From Auanema rhodensis (Eukaryota; Animalia; Nematoda), in assembly GCA_964057225.1 (NCBI GenBank), contig OZ059895.1:17670001-17734000 (forward strand): a stretch of 64,000 nt of DNA, read 5' to 3'. A model generated the notes under the pieces. The model searched no databases. It was not told the DNA's origin and worked only from the letters and a program-made list of their open reading frames with translations. Positions 13,691 to 51,613 of the stretch are shown here, one piece after another (the first letter of the stretch is position 1; every line of letters starts with the position of its first letter). A program made the translations under genes and the position numbers.

Positions 13691-14444
13691 TCTGAAATGA
13701 AAATAGCGTCAAGGAGTTATTAATAGGGTTATGGACAGGAAATGAATAAAGAAAACCAAATGTGATACAGCGAGAATTCCCGCAGCCTAAAGGACAATCG
13801 TCTGACTATGCAAAGGTTTCAAGGGGCGGAGAGAAACTCATACCATACTCCACCTCCATCTCTTCTTTCCATTTCAACCTGTTCTCAGTATTGCAATGTT
13901 AAATGGTACGGTAATCAATAGATATTTTTCTTATTATTGTCAAAACTTAAAAGCAACTTCAAAAATTAGTTTTGAAAATAGCAGAAAATGGCTTATTTTT
14001 CTATCTATACACTATATTTTTGACTTTTATTTTACTTCTCAGAAAACACTGCAGCTATCATACTTAACGAATATAGCCATGTTAGATGATAACTGATCAT
14101 AACAAGATGTGAAATATTTATGCAACTTCGTCAAGACTTGTACTTCACCCTATTAGTGTCATGCCGAAGCGAGACGGCCAGAGACAATAGAAGGCACATT
14201 CAACATTACTGAGTCGTTTTTTGCATGACGAACATACCCGATATGGGATACGTTCACGCGCCCTTATAATATTCAAGTTAAAACATTCCTTGAATTCTTC
14301 GGGAATCACTTGCTAGAGCTCTGGTGCCAATCCTCGTGAAACAACGTCAAGGCAGTATTGTGTGAGTCAAGAAGTTGTGAGCTTGACCAGAATGTTTTCT
14401 ACGTGTTGCTTCTCCAAAATATGATCTTCTGAGATGCCAAAACA

Positions 14445-42543: not shown

Positions 42544-42888
42544 CGTTCCATTCGGACTCCCCATATATGTAGCTGAAGGGTTAGAGCCAGACCACCAGAG
42601 GACCGAGGAATGGCTCCGCCTTCCCTCGTTCCCTTGGTCGGGAGTTCGCCTCTTAGCAAGCTCATGGACGGCTTGTAGTTTAGTCTTTATACTTATATTT
42701 ATCTTATTGTATTGTATCTTTATCTTTGTATATTATTGTTGTAGTTTCATGCCAATAAATCTTTCTCTCTTTTATCTTATGATTGACCTTATGCTCTTTA
42801 TTCCTTACCGCTACACCAAGGAATACTATGCGCGTCATAGTATAAACTACAATGGTTTATATTATCGACGCAGGAGCGTAACGGAACG
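42544..42888 (+). repeat. 5' LTR
   Basis: Direct repeat of 45734-46078. AATAAA at 42754-42759. Internal inverted pair TTGTAGTTTA (42673) / TAAACTACAA (42843). Confidence 0.93.
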
Positions 42889-42901
42889 TGGAGGTTCCAC
42901 C
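42889..42901 (+). promoter_or_regulatory. Primer binding site complementary to the tRNA-Gln 3' end
   Basis: TGGAGGTTCCACC abuts the 5' LTR and is the reverse complement of ...GGUGGAACCU-CCA, the eukaryotic tRNA-Gln acceptor end as recalled. Confidence 0.8.
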
Positions 42902-43874
42902 TCGAACTCATCTTTTGAAAAAAAAAAATTTTTTTTTTATTGTAAAAGTCCATTTTTGCATTCTAAATTATAAATTCCTCCACTTGAAACAACAAAATGA
43001 AGGCGCCAATTTGTTTTAAGGTACAGATACAAGGGATCTCGCTTAAATGCGAGATAGGACCCATAAAATTTTTGCCCGCCGTCCTCAATTTAAAACCGTC
43101 TGAATGTCCACCCTTTTCTATATCGTATCTTGTACCGCTTCTCATGCCATTTTGAGGACGTTTGGATTGAAATAGAGGACACTTTCGCCAAACGAGAAAT
43201 TATAATTGTTCACATTTTTTTTGGGCATAGAGAAGTTTGATTATCGGAACAAAAATTTAAAAGACGCGTGCAATTGATTATAGTTTGTATATTTTGTGGT
43301 CAGGACTAGAATTTTGAAAAATTATTATATTCAGACGTAAAAGATCATTTTACATATTATTTTGCGGGAAACCAAAAACGGTTACATAAATTGAATATAA
43401 AAAGAGACCACACTAGTCCGAAAAAGCCTGGTAAATCTGCATTAAGACTTCTCAGCTCTTATTTGACAGTCAGGTCAAGTTGGCGGAAGCATAACTGCTA
43501 CGGATTTTATCCCCGTAGATTATGTCACCTTCCTCAAATCATTTCGTTGTTTCAACTCATAAGATACCCCTTATCTCCTACAGTAATCCTAAGTAAATGG
43601 GAAATGTTTAAAAATAGACGTATTTTTCTTATTTTCAAAAAGAAATTCGCTTAGGAAAACGCACTTTTGCTTATTTTGATCAAGAAAAAGGACAGCCTTT
43701 TCAATAACTCTCCTCAAACCTCATTAGCATGCACAATGTCGAAAACATTTTGAGCAAAACATGCTATTTAAGGGAAAAAGAATGAGGAAAAGATTGAAAA
43801 CATAAGTCCATTTTCTTGACGAAAACAGAGCAAAGCGCATAAAAATAAAAACACAGAGTACAAGCTTTATTCAG

Positions 43875-44389
43875 TCAAAATCCCCACTTGAAAGCTAGCT
43901 GTCTCTCAAACTCTGCAACAAGAGAGATAGGCTCGTAACTGGGGGTGAGGTATTCGGGATACTCTCTCCCCAGTGAGGCCCTCAGCTGCAATCCAAGCGA
44001 AGAGCTATCATAACATACATAAATTTTAAACAAAATTTTACATTATAATTCATAGAATAAAGGCTGCCTCTCGGTATACCATCTCCAGGGACTTCCTACA
44101 AGTCCACACGGGAGAGCGGCATAAGAATGCGCGCAGAGGTCACGGAGGCAGAGACGCCCTACGAGCTCAATCTCGGGCGCAATTTCCGCCATAGCGGAAA
44201 AATTAACGAGGCCCCTGCCCAAATAGAACATTTGCAGATCCTCAATAAACTAAAATAGCAAAAGAAAATACTGAAATTGACTAATGCACCAACCATTAAT
44301 ACTATATCAGGATGGGGCCTATAAGCCAATCTCTCTTCAGCATCATAAAAGACAATAACGTCATACAGCTTTTGCATGACAAAGGTCAT
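43875..44389 (-). CDS. Putative spliced antisense cargo gene inside the LTR element, unknown product
   Basis: GC-richer blocks separated by short GT..AG segments that join in frame (…HPDIVLM|FIEDLQMFYLGRG…). A stop at 43875-43877 is followed at once by AATAAA (43866-43871). The exon model is ambiguous. Confidence 0.35.
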
Positions 44390-45722
44390 TCCAGTAGGCT
44401 AGACGCTCATTTTTATGAATTCTTAGCTCTCAAAAATAATAAAATCTAGCTTGGTAAACAAGAGAAAAAATTGGGACAAAAACATGATTGAAAGCTACTA
44501 GTGAAGAGAGAAATTAAAGGAAGTACAAGCGGAAAGTGCAAGAGCGGATAAAAATAGTTTTTGAGAAAAGATAAACACCATTAACTATAATAAGCTTACG
44601 GTAGATAGGCGGAGTCAGATTGTTGGCCAAAATTTGGAAAACTCCCTCTCATTTACCCTCCGCATCGCCCAGCGAAGCACGAAAATCCTATTGCTCCCGA
44701 ATCTTTCTCTCTCCCAACACACATCTAAAAGAATCTTACGCACCTTACGTCAACATCCCACACGTAGCTCACCATTCTCGGGTTTTCCAAACCAAGAGTC
44801 CTATAAAGGTGGAAAAAAGATTCTCATCGGCTTTCCGAGCCCTTTACCCGTCCGATACCAACAGTGACGCTACTGTCGCAAGTCGTCGCAGAAGCCGTAC
44901 CCGACTTCTTAGTGTTCAAATAGAAAAACCGCACCAACCAGCCGAGAAGCCGAAGTCGCAAGTCGACCAGTTTTATACTCCCCGAGAAGGAACATATTCA
45001 CCTTCTGACGACACCTACGAAGATCCGGACTTCATCATAGCCGACGACAGAAAAATTTTTTATATACATTCTTTTCTTTTCTGTAGATTGTAAAATGAAA
45101 GTAACGGTGAATTAGAAAAATTTTGATGAGAGATTAAGAGAATAAACAACCAAAAATAAGGAATAAGTGAAAATATAATATAAATAATAGGCTACCGTAC
45201 TTCTTTACGATGATAGAGATAGTCTATCGCACTAAATTGAGCTCCATATGTATCTCCAAGAAGAGACGAAAATTGGCAGGCGCCTAAGCCACACCCCATC
45301 TGAGTGGTAGCCTCCATTAGTACTCAAGGATTCATTCAGAGAGACACATGAAGACGAAAACAATTAATAACTAAAAATCTTTATCCCCATCATCATTAGG
45401 ATACGAGTAACCATGCACGCAAAAAGTTGAATAATTCCTTATTATCTCACATAAATCTCAAATTCATGGAACAATTTTTTTTTATTACAGTACTACAATG
45501 ACTAAATTTATTTTTCTAATCCTCCGTTACAAAATAACATAAAACCCATTATTGTATTCAAATTCTATCTTAATACCATAAAGAAACCTATTAAAACTAT
45601 TTATATATCTTTCTACATGTAGATTTTAAAACTTTTAAATTTATTTGTAAACTCCTAGACTCTAAAACTCAGCTACATATACACTAAAAACTCTTTATAT
45701 CGCGCGGACGCGAAAAATCTTT

Positions 45723-45731
45723 GAAAAAGGG
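45723..45731 (+). promoter_or_regulatory. Polypurine tract
   Basis: GAAAAAGGG followed by CA immediately before the 3' LTR. Confidence 0.7.
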
Positions 45732-45733
45732 CA

Positions 45734-46078
45734 CGTTCCATTCGGACTCCCCATATATGTAGCTGAAGGGTTAGAGCCAGACCACCAGAGGACCGAGGAA
45801 TGGCTCCGCCTTCCCTCGTTCCCTTGGTCGGGAGTTCGCCTCTTAGCAAGCTCATGGACGGCTTGTAGTTTAGTCTTTATACTTATATTTATCTTATTGT
45901 ATTGTATCTTTATCTTTGTATATTATTGTTGTAGTTTCATGCCAATAAATCTTTCTCTCTTTTATCTTATGATTGACCTTATGCTCTTTATTCCTTACCG
46001 CTACACCAAGGAATACTATGCGCGTCATAGTATAAACTACAATGGTTTATATTATCGACGCAGGAGCATAACGGAACG
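45734..46078 (+). repeat. 3' LTR
   Basis: Identical to the 5' LTR except GAGCATA versus GAGCGTA near its end. Confidence 0.93.
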
Positions 46079-46594
46079 AAACAGAAGGTCGACGTTTCAA
46101 TCCCGTCTGAAGGCATGTTTTTATCGTTTTATTAAGTTTTCATAAGTTGTCTACACCCAAAAAAAGTACGAGACTATTTTGTTCATGATTGCCAGATTCG
46201 AATCACGTATTTGGAGCATTTAAAGCTTTGTACAAGCCTTTATAGCTCAGTGGCAGAGCGTCTGTCTCGTAAACAGAAGGTCGACGGTTCAATCCCGTCT
46301 GAAGGCATGTTTTTATCGTTTTATTAAGTTTTCATAAGTTGTCTACACCCAAAAAAGGTACGAGACTATTTTGTTCATGATTGCCAGATTCGAATCACGT
46401 ATTTGGAGCATTTAAAGCTTTGTACAAGCCTTTATAGCTCAGTGGCAGAGCGTCTGTCTCGTAAACAGAAGGTCGACGGTTCAATCCCGTCTGAAGGCAT
46501 GTTTTTATCGTTTTTTTAAGTTTTCAAAGGTTGTCTACACCCATAAAAGGTACGAGAAACAGTTGATGAATGATTTCTTACAAGTATGACTATT

Positions 46595-46755
46595 CAACTT
46601 ACCTGTCCGGAGGCACACCCTGATCAAAAAGGTGGTATCCCCACCGCCATGCCAGATCGTCGTAGTTGATTCAGCAGTGATCTGTATAATACTTTTAAGT
46701 TGAAGTTAGCAAAAGGTAGACTTTTAAGTTCTTCGATGCGCGTAGTTGTAATATT
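46595..46755 (+). pseudogene. U1 snRNA-like sequence (decayed or divergent), copy 1
   Basis: AACTTACCTG, then 16 nt, then GATCAAAAAGGTGGTATCCCCA (U1-70K loop region). Colinear weaker similarity continues through TGATCTGT and AGTTGA to a degenerate Sm-site position (46720). The U1A loop and Sm site are degenerate. Confidence 0.6.
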
Positions 46756-49700
46756 GTAATTGTCAGTGGTCTCTTATGCTTCTAAAAAGGGGAACAGACT
46801 ATAGATAGATCTTTTGCCAATGCTCGTGAAACAACGTCAAGGCGGTACTGTGTGGGTCAAGAAGTTGTGAACTTGACCAGAATGTTTTCTACGTGTTGCT
46901 TCTCCAAAATATGATCTTCTGAGATGCCAAAACATGCCTCCAGGCGGGATTGAACCACCGACCTTTGGTTTACAAGAAAAACGCTCTGCCACTGAGCTAT
47001 AGAGGCTTATGAACTATACGAAACATATTTTCATACAAGCGCAGCTTGTACGGAAACATGAGGTCTCAAGCTAGAGCAAAACTGCATAATATTTTAAGCT
47101 AAATCAAGGCCAAAACGAAAATTCAAATTTGCTTCGCGCAGTCGACGCTACTATTACTTTACCAGAAGTCAGAGTTTTTTAAAAATTTAACGACCACGGC
47201 AGGATTCGAACCTACAATCTTCTGCTCCGTAGGCAGACGCGTTATCCATTGCGCCACGCGGCCACGTTATTAAGTTTCTTATCGCTATTCAAGACTTGCA
47301 GTCCAAGATACATTCATCTTGCCTGGAGAAAAGATGGGCCGTTTGAATAGGACATAACATTCCATAGGAGAACTGATATTTTCCGAACAGTGTGCATGAT
47401 TGTGGCAACACTGTGGATTCATCCACCTGTTCATACAAATGCGTTAATCGATGTTATTCATGATTGCCAGATTCGAATCACATATTTGGAGCATTTAAAG
47501 CTTTGTACAAGCCTTTATAGCTCAGTGGCAGAGCGTCTGTCTCGTAAACAGAAGGTCGACGGTTCAATCCCGTCTGAAGGCATGTTTTTATCGTTTTATT
47601 AAGTTTTCATAAGTTGTCTACACCCAAAAAAGGTACGAGACTATTTTGTTCATGATTGCCAGATTCGAATCACGTATTTGGAGCATTTAAAGCTTTGTAC
47701 AAGCCTTTATAGCTCAGTGGCAGAGCGTCTGTCTCGTAAACAGAAGGTCGACGGTTCAATCCCGTCTGAAGGCATGTTTTTATCGTTTTATTAAGTTTTC
47801 ATAAGTTGTCTACACCCAAAAAAGGTACGAGACTATTTTGTTCATGATTGCCAGATTCGAATCACATATTTGGAGCATTTAAAGCTTTGTACAAGCCTTT
47901 ATAGCTCAGTGGCAGAGCGTCTGTCTCGTAAACAGAAGGTCGACGGTTCAATCCCGTCTGAAGGCATGTTTTTATCGTTTTATTAAGTTTTCATAAGTTG
48001 TCTACAACCAAAAAAGGTACGAGACTATTTTGTTCATGATTGCCAGATTCGAATCACGTATTTGGAGCATTTAAAGCTTTGTACAAGCCTTTATAGCTCA
48101 GTGGCAGAGCGTCTGTCTCGTAAACAGAAGGTCGACGGTTCAATCCCGTCTGAAGGCATGTTTTTATCGTTTTATTAAGTTTTCATAAGTTGTCTACACC
48201 CAAAAAAGGTACGAGACTATTTTGTTCATGATTGCCAGATTCGAATCACGTATTTGGAGCATTTAAAGCTTTGTACAAGCCTTTATAGCTCAGTGGCAGA
48301 GCGTCTGTCTCGTAAACAGAAGGTCGACGTTTCAATCCCGTCTGAAGGCATGTTTTTATCGTTTTATTAAGTTTTCATAAGTTGTCTACACCCAAAAAAG
48401 GTACGAGACTATTTTGTTCATGATTGCCAGATTCGAATCACGTATTTGGAGCATTTAAAGCTTTGTACAAGCCTTTATAGCTCAGTGGCAGAGCGTCTGT
48501 CTCGTAAACAGAAGGTCGACGGTTCAATCCCGTCTGAAGGCATGTTTTTATCGTTTTATTAAGTTTTCATAAGTTGTCTACAACCAAAAAAGGTACGAGA
48601 CTATTTTGTTCATGATTGCCAGATTCGAATCACGTATTTGGAGCATTTAAAGCTTTGTACAAGCCTTTATAGCTCAGTGGCAGAGCGTCTGTCTCGTAAA
48701 CAGAAGGTCGACGGTTCAATCCCGTCTGAAGGCATGTTTTTATCGTTTTATTAAGTTTTCATAAGTTGTCTACACCCAAAAAAGGTACGAGACTATTTTG
48801 TTCATGATTGCCAGATTCGAATCACGTATTTGGAGCATTTAAAGCTTTGTACAAGCCTTTATAGCTCAGTGGCAACCTAACAGACTCTAGATAGATCTTT
48901 TGCGAATCCTCGTGAAACAACATCAAGGCGGTATTGTGTGAGTCAAGAAGTTGTGAACTTGACCAGAATGTTTTCTACGTGTTGCTTCTCCAAAATATGA
49001 TCTTCTGAGATGCCAAAACATGCCTCCAGGCGGGATTGAACCACCGACCTTTGGTTTACAAGACCAACGCTCTGCCACTGAGCTATAGAGGCTTATGAAC
49101 TATACGAAACATATTTTCATACAAGCGCAGCTTGTACGGAAACATGAGGTCTCAAGCTAGAGCAAAACTGCATAATATTTTAAGCTAAATCAAGGCCAAA
49201 ACGAAAATTCAAATTTGCTTCGCGCAGTCGACGCTACTATTACTTTACCAGAAGTCAGAGTTTTTTAAAAATTTAACGACCACGGCAGGATTCGAACCTA
49301 CAATCTTCTGCTCCGTAGGCAGACGCGTTATCCATTGCGCCACGCGGCCACGTTATTAAGTTTCTTATCGCTATTCAAGACTTGCAGTCCAAGATACATT
49401 CATCTTGCCTGGAGAAAAGATGGGCCGTTTGAATAGGACATAACATTCCATAGGAGAACTGATATTTTCCGAACAGTGTGCATGATTGTGGCAACACTGT
49501 GGATTCATCCACCTGTTCATACAAATGCGTTAATCGATGTTATTCATGATTGCCAGATTCGAATCACATATTTGGAGCATTTAAAGCTTTGTACAAGCCT
49601 TTATAGCTCAGTGGCAGAGCGTCTGTCTCGTAAACAGAAGGTCGACGTTTCAATCCCGTCTGAAGGCATGTTTTTATCGTTTTATTAAGTTTTCATAAGT

Positions 49701-49955
49701 TGTCTACACCCAAAAAAGGTACGAGACTATTTTGTTCATGATTGCCAGATTCGAATCACGTATTTGGAGCATTTAAAGCTTTGTACAAGCCTTTATAGCT
49801 CAGTGGCAGAGCGTCTGTCTCGTAAACAGAAGGTCGACGGTTCAATCCCGTCTGAAGGCAGTTTTTCATGGTTTTTTTAAGTTTTCATAAGTTGTCTACA
49901 CCCATAAAAGGTACGAGAAACAGTTGATGAATGATTTCTTACAAGTATGACTATT

Positions 49956-50116
49956 CAACTCACCTGTCCGGAGGCACACCCTGATCAAAAAGGTGGTATC
50001 CCCACCGCCATGCCAGATCGTCGTAGTTGATTCAGCAGTGATCTGTATAATACCTTTAAGTTGAAGTTAGCAAAAGGTAGACTTTTGAGTTCTTCGATGC
50101 GTGTAGTTGTAATATT
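49956..50116 (+). pseudogene. U1 snRNA-like sequence, copy 2
   Basis: Near-identical to copy 1. The 5' motif reads AACTCACCTG and the Sm position reads GACTTTTGAG. Confidence 0.55.
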
Positions 50117-51613
50117 GTAATTGTCAGTGGTCTCTTATGCTTCTAAAAAGGGGAACAGAATCTAGATAGATCTTTTGCGAATCTTCGTGAAACAACGTCA
50201 AGGCGGTATTGTGTGAGTCAAGAAGTTGTGAACTTGACCAGAATGTTTTCTACGTGTTGCTTCTCCAAAATATGATCTTCTGAGATGCCAAAACATGCCT
50301 CCAGGCGGGATTGAACCACCGACCTTTGGTTTACAAGACCAACGCTCTGCCACTGAGCTATAGAGGCTTATGAACTATACGAAACATATTTTCATACAAG
50401 CGCAGCTTGTACGGAAACATGAGGTCTCAAGCTAGAGCAAAACTGCATAATATTTTAAGCTAAATCAAGGCCAAAACGAAAATTCAAATTTGCTTCGCGC
50501 AGTCGACGCTACTATTACTTTACCAGAAGTCAGAGTTTTTTAAAAATTTAACGACCACGGCAGGATTCGAACCTACAATCTTCTGCTCCGTAGGCAGACG
50601 CGTTATCCATTGCGCCACGCGGCCACGTTATTAAGTTTCTTATCGCTATTCAAGACTTGCAGTCCAAGATACATTCATCTTGCCTGGAGAAAAGATGGGC
50701 CGTTTGAATAGGACATAACATTCCATAGGAGAACTGATATTTTCCGAACAGTGTGCATGATTGTGGCAACACTGTGGATTCATCCACCTGTTCATACAAA
50801 TGCGTTAATCGATGTTATTCATGATTGCCAGATTCGAATCACATATTTGGAGCATTTAAAGCTTTGTACAAGCCTTTATAGCTCAGTGGCAGAGCGTCTG
50901 TCTCGTAAACAGAAGGTCGACGGTTCAATCCCGTCTGAAGGCATGTTTTTATCGTTTTATTAAGTTTTCATAAGTTGTCTACACCCAAAAAAGGTACGAG
51001 ACTATTTTGTTCATGATTGCCAGATTCGAATCACGTATTTGGAGCATTTAAAGCTTTGTACAAGCCTTTATAGCTCAGTGGCAGAGCGTCTGTCTCGTAA
51101 ACAGAAGGTCGACGGTTCAATCCCGTCTGAAGGCATGTTTTTATCGTTTTATTAAGTTTTCATAAGTTGTCTACACCCAAAAAAGGTACGAGACTATTTT
51201 GTTCATGATTGCCAGATTTGAATCACGTATTTGGAGCATTTAAAGCTTTGTACAAGCCTTTATAGCTCAGTGGCAGAGCGTCTGTCTCGTAAACAGAAGG
51301 TCGACGGTTCAATCCCGTCTGAAGGCATGTTTTTATCGTTTTATTAAGTTTTCATAAGTTGTCTACACCCAAAAAAGGTACGAGACTATTTTATTTATGA
51401 TTGCCAGATTCGAATCACGTATTTGGAGCATTTAAAGCTTTGTAAAAGCCTTTATAGCTCAGTGGCAACCTAACAGACTATAGATAGATCTTTTGCCAAT
51501 CCTCTTGAAACAACGTCAAGGCAGTATTGTGTGAGTCAAGAAGTTGTGAGCTTAACCAGAATGTTTTCTACGTGTTGCTTCTCCAAAATATGATTTTCTG
51601 AGATGCCAAAACA

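Follow-up and report, generated by a model that had tools for sequence, protein, structure and literature searches.

A probable DNA-level U1 snRNA pseudogene in a tandem tRNA-Thr/tRNA-Arg array of Auanema rhodensis

Two units of a large tandem tRNA gene array in A. rhodensis carry a 235-bp spacer that the other units lack, which raises the question of what this spacer is and how it came to lie among tRNA genes. A sequence-only reading of the locus had taken it for a pseudogene or variant of U1 snRNA that was co-amplified in an ancestral cassette of three tRNA genes and U1 and was later deleted from 23 of the 25 units. In the window, by which we mean the whole analysed stretch of 64,000 nucleotides, the array and the spacers lie as follows.

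14329–51686, no strand assigned: whole tandem array, from ARAGORN and Rfam tRNA calls and the unit map (left boundary set by alignment, right end by reading)
46428–46499, plus strand: last full tRNA-Thr(CGT) ahead of the relic in copy 1
46558–46792, plus strand: segment of 235 bp specific to long units, copy 1
49919–50153, plus strand: segment of 235 bp specific to long units, copy 2, which differs from copy 1 at 4 positions

The 25 array units each consist of tRNA-Thr(TGT) and tRNA-Arg(ACG), both on the minus strand, followed by sub-repeats of tRNA-Thr(CGT) that are 192 bp long, lie on the plus strand and occur in 1–13 copies per unit. Our unit map agrees with the claimed 23 short and two long units, the latter lying close together near the right end of the array, where the terminal unit is again short. 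The claim that the spacer is confined to two sites held true to the base, and no further copy was found elsewhere in the 181-Mb genome. All four differing positions between the copies (46600, 46693, 46726 and 46741 in copy 1) are transitions. Comparison of the flanking 700 bp did not pair the two long units as mutual nearest relatives, which indicates that exchange between units has blurred their history. The right flank of the array gave Rfam matches at chance level only.

Judged by profile and covariance-model alignments, the 235-bp segment is homologous to U1. It is made up of a spacer between the PSE promoter box and the gene start, the body of the U1 relic and about 35 nt of 3′ flank, with the body placed as follows.

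46595–46757, plus strand: body of the U1 relic in copy 1; identity to true U1 about 63%
49956–50118, plus strand: body of the U1 relic in copy 2, where T has changed to C in the motif that pairs with the 5′ splice site

For copy 1 the limits are 46595–46752 with Infernal and 46596–46740 with nhmmer, and the end at 46757 was set by collinearity with the true U1 genes of 161–163 nt; for copy 2 they are 49956–50092 and 49957–50102, respectively. When a profile built on the U1 genes of this genome was run against both strands of the whole window, nhmmer returned the two copies with E-values of 2e-12 and 4e-12, both matches spanning profile positions 2–148. The Infernal check with Rfam U1 (RF00003) that the sequence-only reading had proposed was favourable in part: U1 was the best family for both spacers and aligned from end to end (model positions 1–166), but with 21.4 bits (E 0.002) for copy 1 and 17.7 bits (E 0.023) for copy 2 no U1 match reached the Rfam gathering score of 69.5 bits. 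The true U1 genes of the genome score 102–116 bits with the same model. Global alignment of the relic with true U1 gives an identity of about 63% (z about 20 relative to shuffled sequences). The relic diverges by 37%, where the compared true U1 genes differ from one another by no more than 14%, and its body is equidistant from all U1 lineages of the genome. The proposed motif layout, CAACTTACCTG followed after 16 nt by a 22-mer, was confirmed; the same 16-nt spacing occurs in the true U1 genes, and the 22-mer had no match in 100 shuffles. Other details of the earlier description did not survive comparison with the genome's own genes. The 22-mer, said to match nematode U1 at 19 of 22 positions, matches these genes at 15–17 of 22; the similarity described as gap-free is collinear but contains three small indels; and instead of many transitions, transitions and transversions are about equally frequent (30:28).

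We attempted to assign the relic to a U1 lineage by its flanks and had to reject this, as outside the PSE the similarity is at chance level and the gene body is equidistant. Between PSE and gene start 13–14 of 38 positions are identical to true genes (10.2 ± 2.7 expected by chance), the 3′ flank is no more similar than chance would predict, and no homology to the flanks of true U1 genes was detectable beyond the PSE. The true U1 lineages of the genome differ among themselves in both the PSE-to-start stretch and the 3′ flank. A candidate second relic in the left flank of the array (14241–14267), which resembles stem-loop 4, was likewise rejected, with an nhmmer E-value of 0.99 and no Rfam U1 match; the left flank has no homology to a long unit (local score 19, shuffle mean 18.2). 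Between this stretch and the array boundary lie 58 nt, which equals the distance found for the relic end in the long units.

A promoter box bears on the origin of the relic. The U1, U2, U5 and SL1 genes of the genome have a box ending in TAC(G/C) located 40–41 nt upstream of their first base, and at the loci of genes with the consensus form the pattern matches only at the expected promoter positions. SL1-type genes and the form of U1 mark the genome as that of a nematode. Both relic copies have a promoter box of this kind.

46538–46554, plus strand: PSE of relic copy 1, matching the consensus CACNCRWANNANNTACG and ending 40 nt ahead of the first relic base
49899–49915, plus strand: PSE of relic copy 2, ending 40 nt ahead of the first relic base

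The box of copy 1 lies inside the 58-nt 3′ flank (46500–46557) of the preceding tRNA-Thr(CGT), and it was therefore copied along with every 192-bp sub-repeat, the boundaries of which were mapped separately. The window contains 46 consensus PSE boxes, all on the plus strand and all in Thr(CGT) 3′ flanks, where 0.03 would be expected by chance. The presence of the box in a flank common to all sub-repeats, and at the exact promoter distance from the relic, implies that it was contiguous with the gene body before the sub-repeats multiplied.

What has become of the U1 features themselves points to decay. The best-preserved blocks are the 5′ motif and the loop of stem-loop I. Where true U1 has ACUUACCUG at the 5′ end that pairs with the 5′ splice site, copy 1 reads ACTTACCTG and copy 2 reads ACTCACCTG, with one change, just as had been claimed. 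In stem-loop I the U1-70K loop GAUCAnnAAG and the 16-nt spacing are kept, and 7 of 10 stem pairs remain. The damage reported for the U1A loop and the Sm site is evident in the alignment to true U1: at the position of the stem-loop II loop (AUUGCAC), ATTGCAC has become GTCGTAG, and at the Sm site (A-AUUUUUG-R) AATTTTTG has become GACTTTT(A/G), within GACTTTTA in copy 1 and GACTTTTG in copy 2. Stem-loop 4 retains 4 of 9 pairs. True U1 genes give the four-helix fold with −51 to −57 kcal/mol (z −2.0 to −2.3), whereas the relics reach −31.7 and −36.7 kcal/mol (z −0.05 and −1.07), lack the four-helix junction and have their 5′ end paired in the minimum-energy structure. Changed sites are equally frequent among paired (39/96) and unpaired (24/65) positions. 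The 31 of 48 pairs that are kept would suggest a past life as a structured variant under uniform substitutions (P = 0.04), but this candidate was abandoned because random decay with the observed transition share retains 27.3 ± 3.1 pairs (P = 0.15); the surviving base pairs thus appear to fit neutral decay. By every structural criterion tested the relic is a pseudogene, and it is best described as a dead gene rather than a “hidden gene”. It may well be transcribed, since no specified position of the consensus is changed in its PSE, and we infer that it makes no stable RNA. No RNA run contained the stretch, and no relic match was found in two candidate RNA sets, which are tiny sets of assembled contigs, probably not of small RNA, so that this absence is uninformative.

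We propose, with a probability of about 0.85, that the 235-bp segment is a DNA-level, class-I-type U1 pseudogene that has kept its own promoter box, and that the array arose from a cassette of tRNA genes and U1. An expressed variant U1, comparable to the human vU1 genes, would require that the PSE drives a U1-like RNA, which in copy 2, with ACUCACCUG, would prefer GUGAGU donors. We consider this unlikely. The consensus PSE at the right spacing and the preservation of the 5′ motif and stem-loop I loop speak in its favour, as do 4–5 base pairs that are altered on both sides and still canonical, and human class I U1 “pseudogenes” are expressed despite many changes, even a deletion of the U1A site (PMC3561869). 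However, a divergence of 37%, the damaged Sm site, the loss of stem-loop 4 and of the U1 fold, the paired 5′ end and a pair retention no better than random decay are difficult to reconcile with a working RNA, and the segment exists in only two copies and has gone from 23 of 25 units without replacement. The change in the copy 2 motif is one of the four transitions between the copies, and a contig from another sample agrees with copy 1 at this position; as ACTCACCTG would be one of four point differences between dead copies, a functional reading of it is not needed.

The opposite polarity, in which insertion or conversion placed a U1 fragment in two units of an array that began without U1, seems very improbable to us. 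Such an event would fit the finding of the segment in only two of 25 units, close together near one end with a short terminal unit, but it would need to restore a complete tRNA and its flank, and it is opposed by the relic PSE, which lies in the flank common to all sub-repeats at exact promoter distance, and by the truncated tRNA and filler in the short units, which are hallmarks of deletion. A still weaker case can be made for a minus-strand exon, which the sequence-only reading had itself named as the finding that would overturn the U1 assignment. The reverse complement of the 5′ motif is indeed a perfect splice donor, CAG|GTAAGT, and an acceptor-like TTTTAG is present at 46787 on the minus strand. 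All three minus frames, however, contain at least two stops each in the 198 nt upstream of the donor, the spacer has no ORF of more than 30 aa, no RNA contig in the small assembled-contig sets falls on the segment, and the collinear U1 similarity over about 150 nt and the plus-strand PSE would be left unexplained. An exon is thus extremely implausible. That the likeness to U1 arose by chance is hardly conceivable: the Rfam scores are far under the gathering threshold, but the nhmmer E-value of 2e-12 and the z of about 20 each refute it already, and the exact PSE spacing and the shuffled 22-mer point the same way.

The short units record how the pseudogene was lost. An example of their junction is located as follows.

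48855–48878, plus strand: short-unit junction, the first 20 nt of tRNA-Thr(CGT) followed by ACCT, after which the homologue of 46793 onward continues

The identical junction (tRNA nucleotide 20, ACCT, downstream sequence) is present in 23 of 23 short units, and an independent DNA contig joins 46447 to 46793 with ACCT between them. One junction common to 23 units argues for one deletion that later spread, not for 23 losses, and the data support a single event of about 345 bp followed by spread through unequal exchange. Parsimony within this one array likewise supports the long unit as the ancestral form, because the relic PSE lies 40 nt upstream in the Thr(CGT) flank common to all sub-repeats, because the short units all have the same joint, at which a shortened tRNA meets a filler of 4 nt, and because the minus-strand exon is unsupported. 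The DNA-level origin is suggested by the kept promoter, the lack of an A-tail and the presence of just two copies in the genome, both in the array; marks of retro-processing are absent, with an alignment over the full length of the gene and no A-run abutting the 3′ end.

We infer the following order of events. A working U1 gene with its PSE would have lain just downstream of Thr(CGT), in a cassette of Thr(TGT), Arg(ACG), Thr(CGT) and U1. A 192-bp tandem duplication of Thr(CGT), with its right breakpoint 3 nt beyond the PSE, would then have given each new tRNA copy a PSE of its own. In one unit that contained two or more Thr(CGT) genes, a deletion of about 345 bp may have taken out the terminal 52 nt of its final tRNA together with the 58-nt flank and the 235 bp with U1, leaving the 4-nt filler ACCT. 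Unequal crossing-over and conversion would have carried the resulting short form into 23 of the 25 units, and two long units survive. The U1 copy itself would have lost its function and drifted to about 63% identity. The proposed U1 pseudogene and its ancestral tRNA-tRNA-tRNA-U1 cassette are thus supported, while the deletion from 23 units is better described as one event that spread.

A tRNA gene does stand beside living U1 genes of this genome, as the earlier reading had suggested should be checked. On the same contig, at 15.86–16.19 Mb and thus 1.5–1.8 Mb away, living arrays combine U1 with tRNA-Asp(GTC) in a unit of 727 bp, with an intact U1 scoring 108 bits and tRNA-Asp 240 nt downstream of it. 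Both these arrays and the one studied here unite U1, a Pol II gene, with a Pol III tRNA gene in one tandem unit, in the same orientation. In contrast, the relic array has Thr and Arg tRNAs, with a tRNA 95 nt upstream of U1, and its U1 is dead and mostly lost. The differing partners, spacing and unit suggest that the two U1-tRNA associations are independent, and the living arrays indicate that such cassettes do become amplified in this genome. Linkage of snRNA and tRNA genes is not exotic here. In C. elegans, SL1 is linked to 5S rDNA. In trypanosomatids, snRNA and tRNA genes are linked (PMC2695483) and the tRNA boxes serve the snRNA promoter. All these cases join unrelated small-RNA genes of different polymerases in one repeat or cluster, but the partners there are functional, whereas the relic array is without sign of functional coupling. 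Its U1-tRNA linkage is a historical accident kept as a fossil.

A close parallel is found in the human class I U1 pseudogenes or variant U1 genes at 1q12-21, many of which are expressed (Denison and Weiner 1982; O'Reilly et al. 2013, PMC3561869). Both are imperfect DNA-level copies of U1 that keep the PSE, have numerous tRNA genes around them (PMC3561869) and lie on the chromosome of the true U1 genes at a separate place. The relic is far more decayed, at about 63% identity, has no detectable flank homology to true genes apart from the PSE, and sits within a tandem tRNA repeat unit, while the human copies are simply scattered among tRNA genes. Retro-processed snRNA pseudogenes (human class II/III) and snRNA-headed SINEs (PMC4494074) arise via RNA, are dispersed, are without the upstream promoter, and often have A-rich tails or many copies. 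They share with the relic that U1-derived sequence no longer works as U1, but the relic has a promoter box at the right distance, no tail and two copies in the same array. It is a molecular fossil and a known kind of pseudogene, not a new gene type. We found nothing specific in the literature on nematode U1-tRNA arrays or on this Thr/Arg array.

For annotation, neither should the relic be recorded as a U1 gene nor the consensus PSE boxes in the array be read as snRNA promoters. It is doubtful, although conceivable, that the 46 boxes could load SNAPc on a Pol III tRNA array and either initiate short transcripts from about 25 nt ahead of every following tRNA or change the chromatin of the array, or, separately, that the relics could give unstable or variant U1-like RNAs. 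In conclusion, the promoter box serves as a tracer of array history, and with it the build-up of a large tRNA array can be dated by structure, from a cassette through sub-repeat duplication and one deletion to the spread of the deleted form. The array would represent a second, independent U1-tRNA association in a genome with most small-RNA genes in tandem arrays, which supports the view that mixed arrays arise by accidental co-amplification of neighbours and not by functional coupling.

The window lies at 17.67 Mb of contig C3 in the 181-Mb genome, and 127 of its 128 tRNA genes belong to a tandem array that spans roughly 14329-51686. In each unit, a minus-strand pair, tRNA-Thr(TGT) and tRNA-Arg(ACG), precedes a 192-bp sub-repeat that carries tRNA-Thr(CGT) on the plus strand and is present in 1 to 13 copies. 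The array comprises 25 units, 23 with a "short" junction and two, the long units, with a 235-bp segment instead. The two copies of this segment differ at four positions, all by transitions, and there is no third copy in the genome. The segments and the promoter boxes (proximal sequence element, PSE) in front of them are:

46538-46554, plus strand, PSE of copy 1
46558-46792, 235-bp segment, copy 1
49899-49915, plus strand, PSE of copy 2
49919-50153, 235-bp segment, copy 2

The sequence-only reading had noticed a U1-like segment in the two long units, and this observation is confirmed. A U1 profile made from seven true U1 genes (the genome's own intact copies) and run with nhmmer on both strands of the whole window found the two segments at E 2e-12 and 4e-12 and no other significant match. 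Against every true U1 lineage, pairwise alignment gave the relic an identity of about 63% (100 matches in 158 aligned positions), at z about 20 relative to shuffled sequence; among the true U1 genes compared, identity is 86-99%. Profile E values, pairwise identity and shuffle z thus establish the homology to U1. In the Rfam search suggested earlier, U1 (RF00003, model positions 1-166) was the best family for both segments searched alone, with 21.4 bits at E 0.002 for copy 1 and 17.7 bits at E 0.023 for copy 2. No U1 match in the window reached the gathering score; the true U1 genes score 102-116 bits. The agreement of 19/22 given earlier for a 22-mer falls to 15-17/22 against the genome's own U1. 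A stretch at 14241-14267, just left of the array and 58 nt from its boundary, resembles U1 stem-loop 4; as a second relic it was rejected as a chance resemblance, since its nhmmer E value is 0.99 and it shares no homology with the long unit.

The promoter box of the relic is a point new in this analysis. All true U1 genes have an upstream box in common, and that of the relic lies at equal distance, with 56 nt from the ACCC of the box to the first base. The consensus from the U1, U2 and U5 genes of the genome is CACNCRWANNANNTACG, with its end placed 40-41 nt ahead of the first base, and the SL1 genes have AATACG at the corresponding position. This shared box is the nematode PSE, described as SNAPc-bound (Thomas et al. 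1990, cited by bioRxiv 10.64898/2026.08.31.747621). At loci of genes with the consensus form, the pattern matches at the expected promoter positions only; array-type U1 (TACC), one U5 variant and SL1 deviate and give no match. Both relic boxes satisfy every specified consensus position. Due to the promoter kept at its native distance, the relic can be identified as a DNA-level copy that was not retro-processed.

The PSE also traces the history of the array. It is located within the 58-nt 3' flank of tRNA-Thr(CGT), and because the 192-bp sub-repeat starts about 60 nt ahead of the tRNA and stops 3 nt beyond the PSE, each duplication copied the box. The window contains 46 consensus boxes versus 0.03 expected by chance, all on the plus strand in Thr(CGT) 3' flanks, and a U1-like body follows only two of them. 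The boxes, mostly orphans, span 19251-51382; they occur in the 3' flank of most Thr(CGT) copies, with 66 nt between the end of each box and the next tRNA. PSE and U1 body must have been contiguous during the working life of the gene. Thus, the Thr(CGT) sub-repeat family derives from a tRNA directly upstream of a U1 gene.

In the short units, the place of the segment is taken by one more spacer, the first 20 nt of Thr(CGT), ACCT and sequence homologous to that after 46792. The junction with ACCT is identical in 23/23 short units, and in an independent DNA run one contig joins 46447 to 46793 with ACCT between them. The truncated tRNA and the filler are what a single deletion of roughly 345 bp left behind as its scar; it would have occurred in a unit already holding two or more Thr(CGT) copies, and the short form would then have spread through the array. 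Of the earlier claim that the segment was deleted from 23 of 25 units, the counts stand, but the one shared junction indicates a single deletion and later spread. The long form was also found in DNA runs under two other organism labels, at a depth far below that of the tRNA flanks. Shared sequence differs by 1-2% between units and the two long units are not mutual nearest relatives, so exchange among units is ongoing and unit similarity cannot date these events.

The relic has decayed extensively. Its U1A loop and Sm site are altered and stem-loop 4 retains 4/9 pairs. Folding predictions give true U1 genes their canonical four-helix junction, with energies of -51 to -57 kcal/mol and z of -2.0 to -2.3; the relics, at -31.7 kcal/mol (z -0.05) and -36.7 kcal/mol (z -1.07), lack it and have a paired 5' end. 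Overall, 31/48 U1 base pairs are retained; a true U1 decayed at random by the same number of changes, at the observed transition share, retains 27.3 +/- 3.1 (P = 0.15). Changes are equally frequent at paired and unpaired positions. This is the pattern of neutral decay, and the 5' motif and stem-loop I loop that first drew attention are simply the best-preserved blocks.

An expressed variant U1 would agree with the intact-looking PSE and with the frequent expression of human class I "pseudogenes" (PMC3561869), but with Sm site, stem-loop 4 and fold all lost we regard it as unlikely. Secondary insertion of the U1 segment into two units, which would make the long units derived, is contradicted by both the PSE tracer and the deletion scar and is quite improbable. 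Less credible still is a minus-strand exon whose donor accounts for the U1-like motif: over the 198 nt that precede the putative donor, each frame is broken by at least two stops, there is no ORF above 30 aa, and two small assembled RNA contig sets contain no contig on the segment. U1 homology, decay, PSE tracer and deletion scar together support, with these refinements, the proposal of a U1 pseudogene descended from a tRNA-U1 cassette.

Several further features of the array were recorded. With 77 full tRNA-Thr(CGT) copies within 14445-51686, a single threonine anticodon has a very large number of genes. ARAGORN called a tRNA-Tyr(GTA) at 46935-47006 on the minus strand; this gene is a copy of Thr(TGT) in which two neighbouring bases beside the anticodon have changed (CC to AA, plus strand), probably a damaged one (52.8 Rfam bits; sister copies 70.3). 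A 3.5-kb LTR element (42544-46078) interrupts one tRNA-Thr(CGT) copy at its anticodon loop and is accompanied by a 4-bp target duplication (AAAC). Its two 345-bp LTRs differ at a single base and no long ORF is apparent on reading; the element is very young.

A tRNA does lie beside the species' own U1, as the sequence-only reading had asked: on contig C3 there are also living arrays whose 727-bp unit combines an intact U1 with a tRNA-Asp(GTC). A U1 5'-end pattern gave 118 matches genome-wide versus 0 in the control, nearly all on C3. In these array-type genes (L006-L020, C3 15.86-16.19 Mb) the promoter box has TACC or TACT at its end in place of TACG, and AAC at its start in place of CAC; dispersed U1 genes at C3 5.7-6.2 Mb have the consensus form. 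Large tandem arrays were also seen for U2 (C1 10.96-11.28 Mb, spacing about 2.46 kb), U5 (C8 10.43-10.53 Mb, about 371 bp) and SL1-type genes (C3 6.74-7.10 Mb, about 252 or 504 bp; 54-62 bits against an Rfam gathering score of 75). In contrast to the relic array, the living U1 arrays have a different tRNA on the opposite side of U1; the two U1-tRNA associations are therefore of separate origin. Among described systems, the nearest parallel is the human class I U1 pseudogene/variant U1 locus at 1q12-21, where the PSE is retained and numerous tRNA genes are interspersed (PMC3561869). The relic in Auanema rhodensis is thus a tidy molecular fossil of a kind already known.
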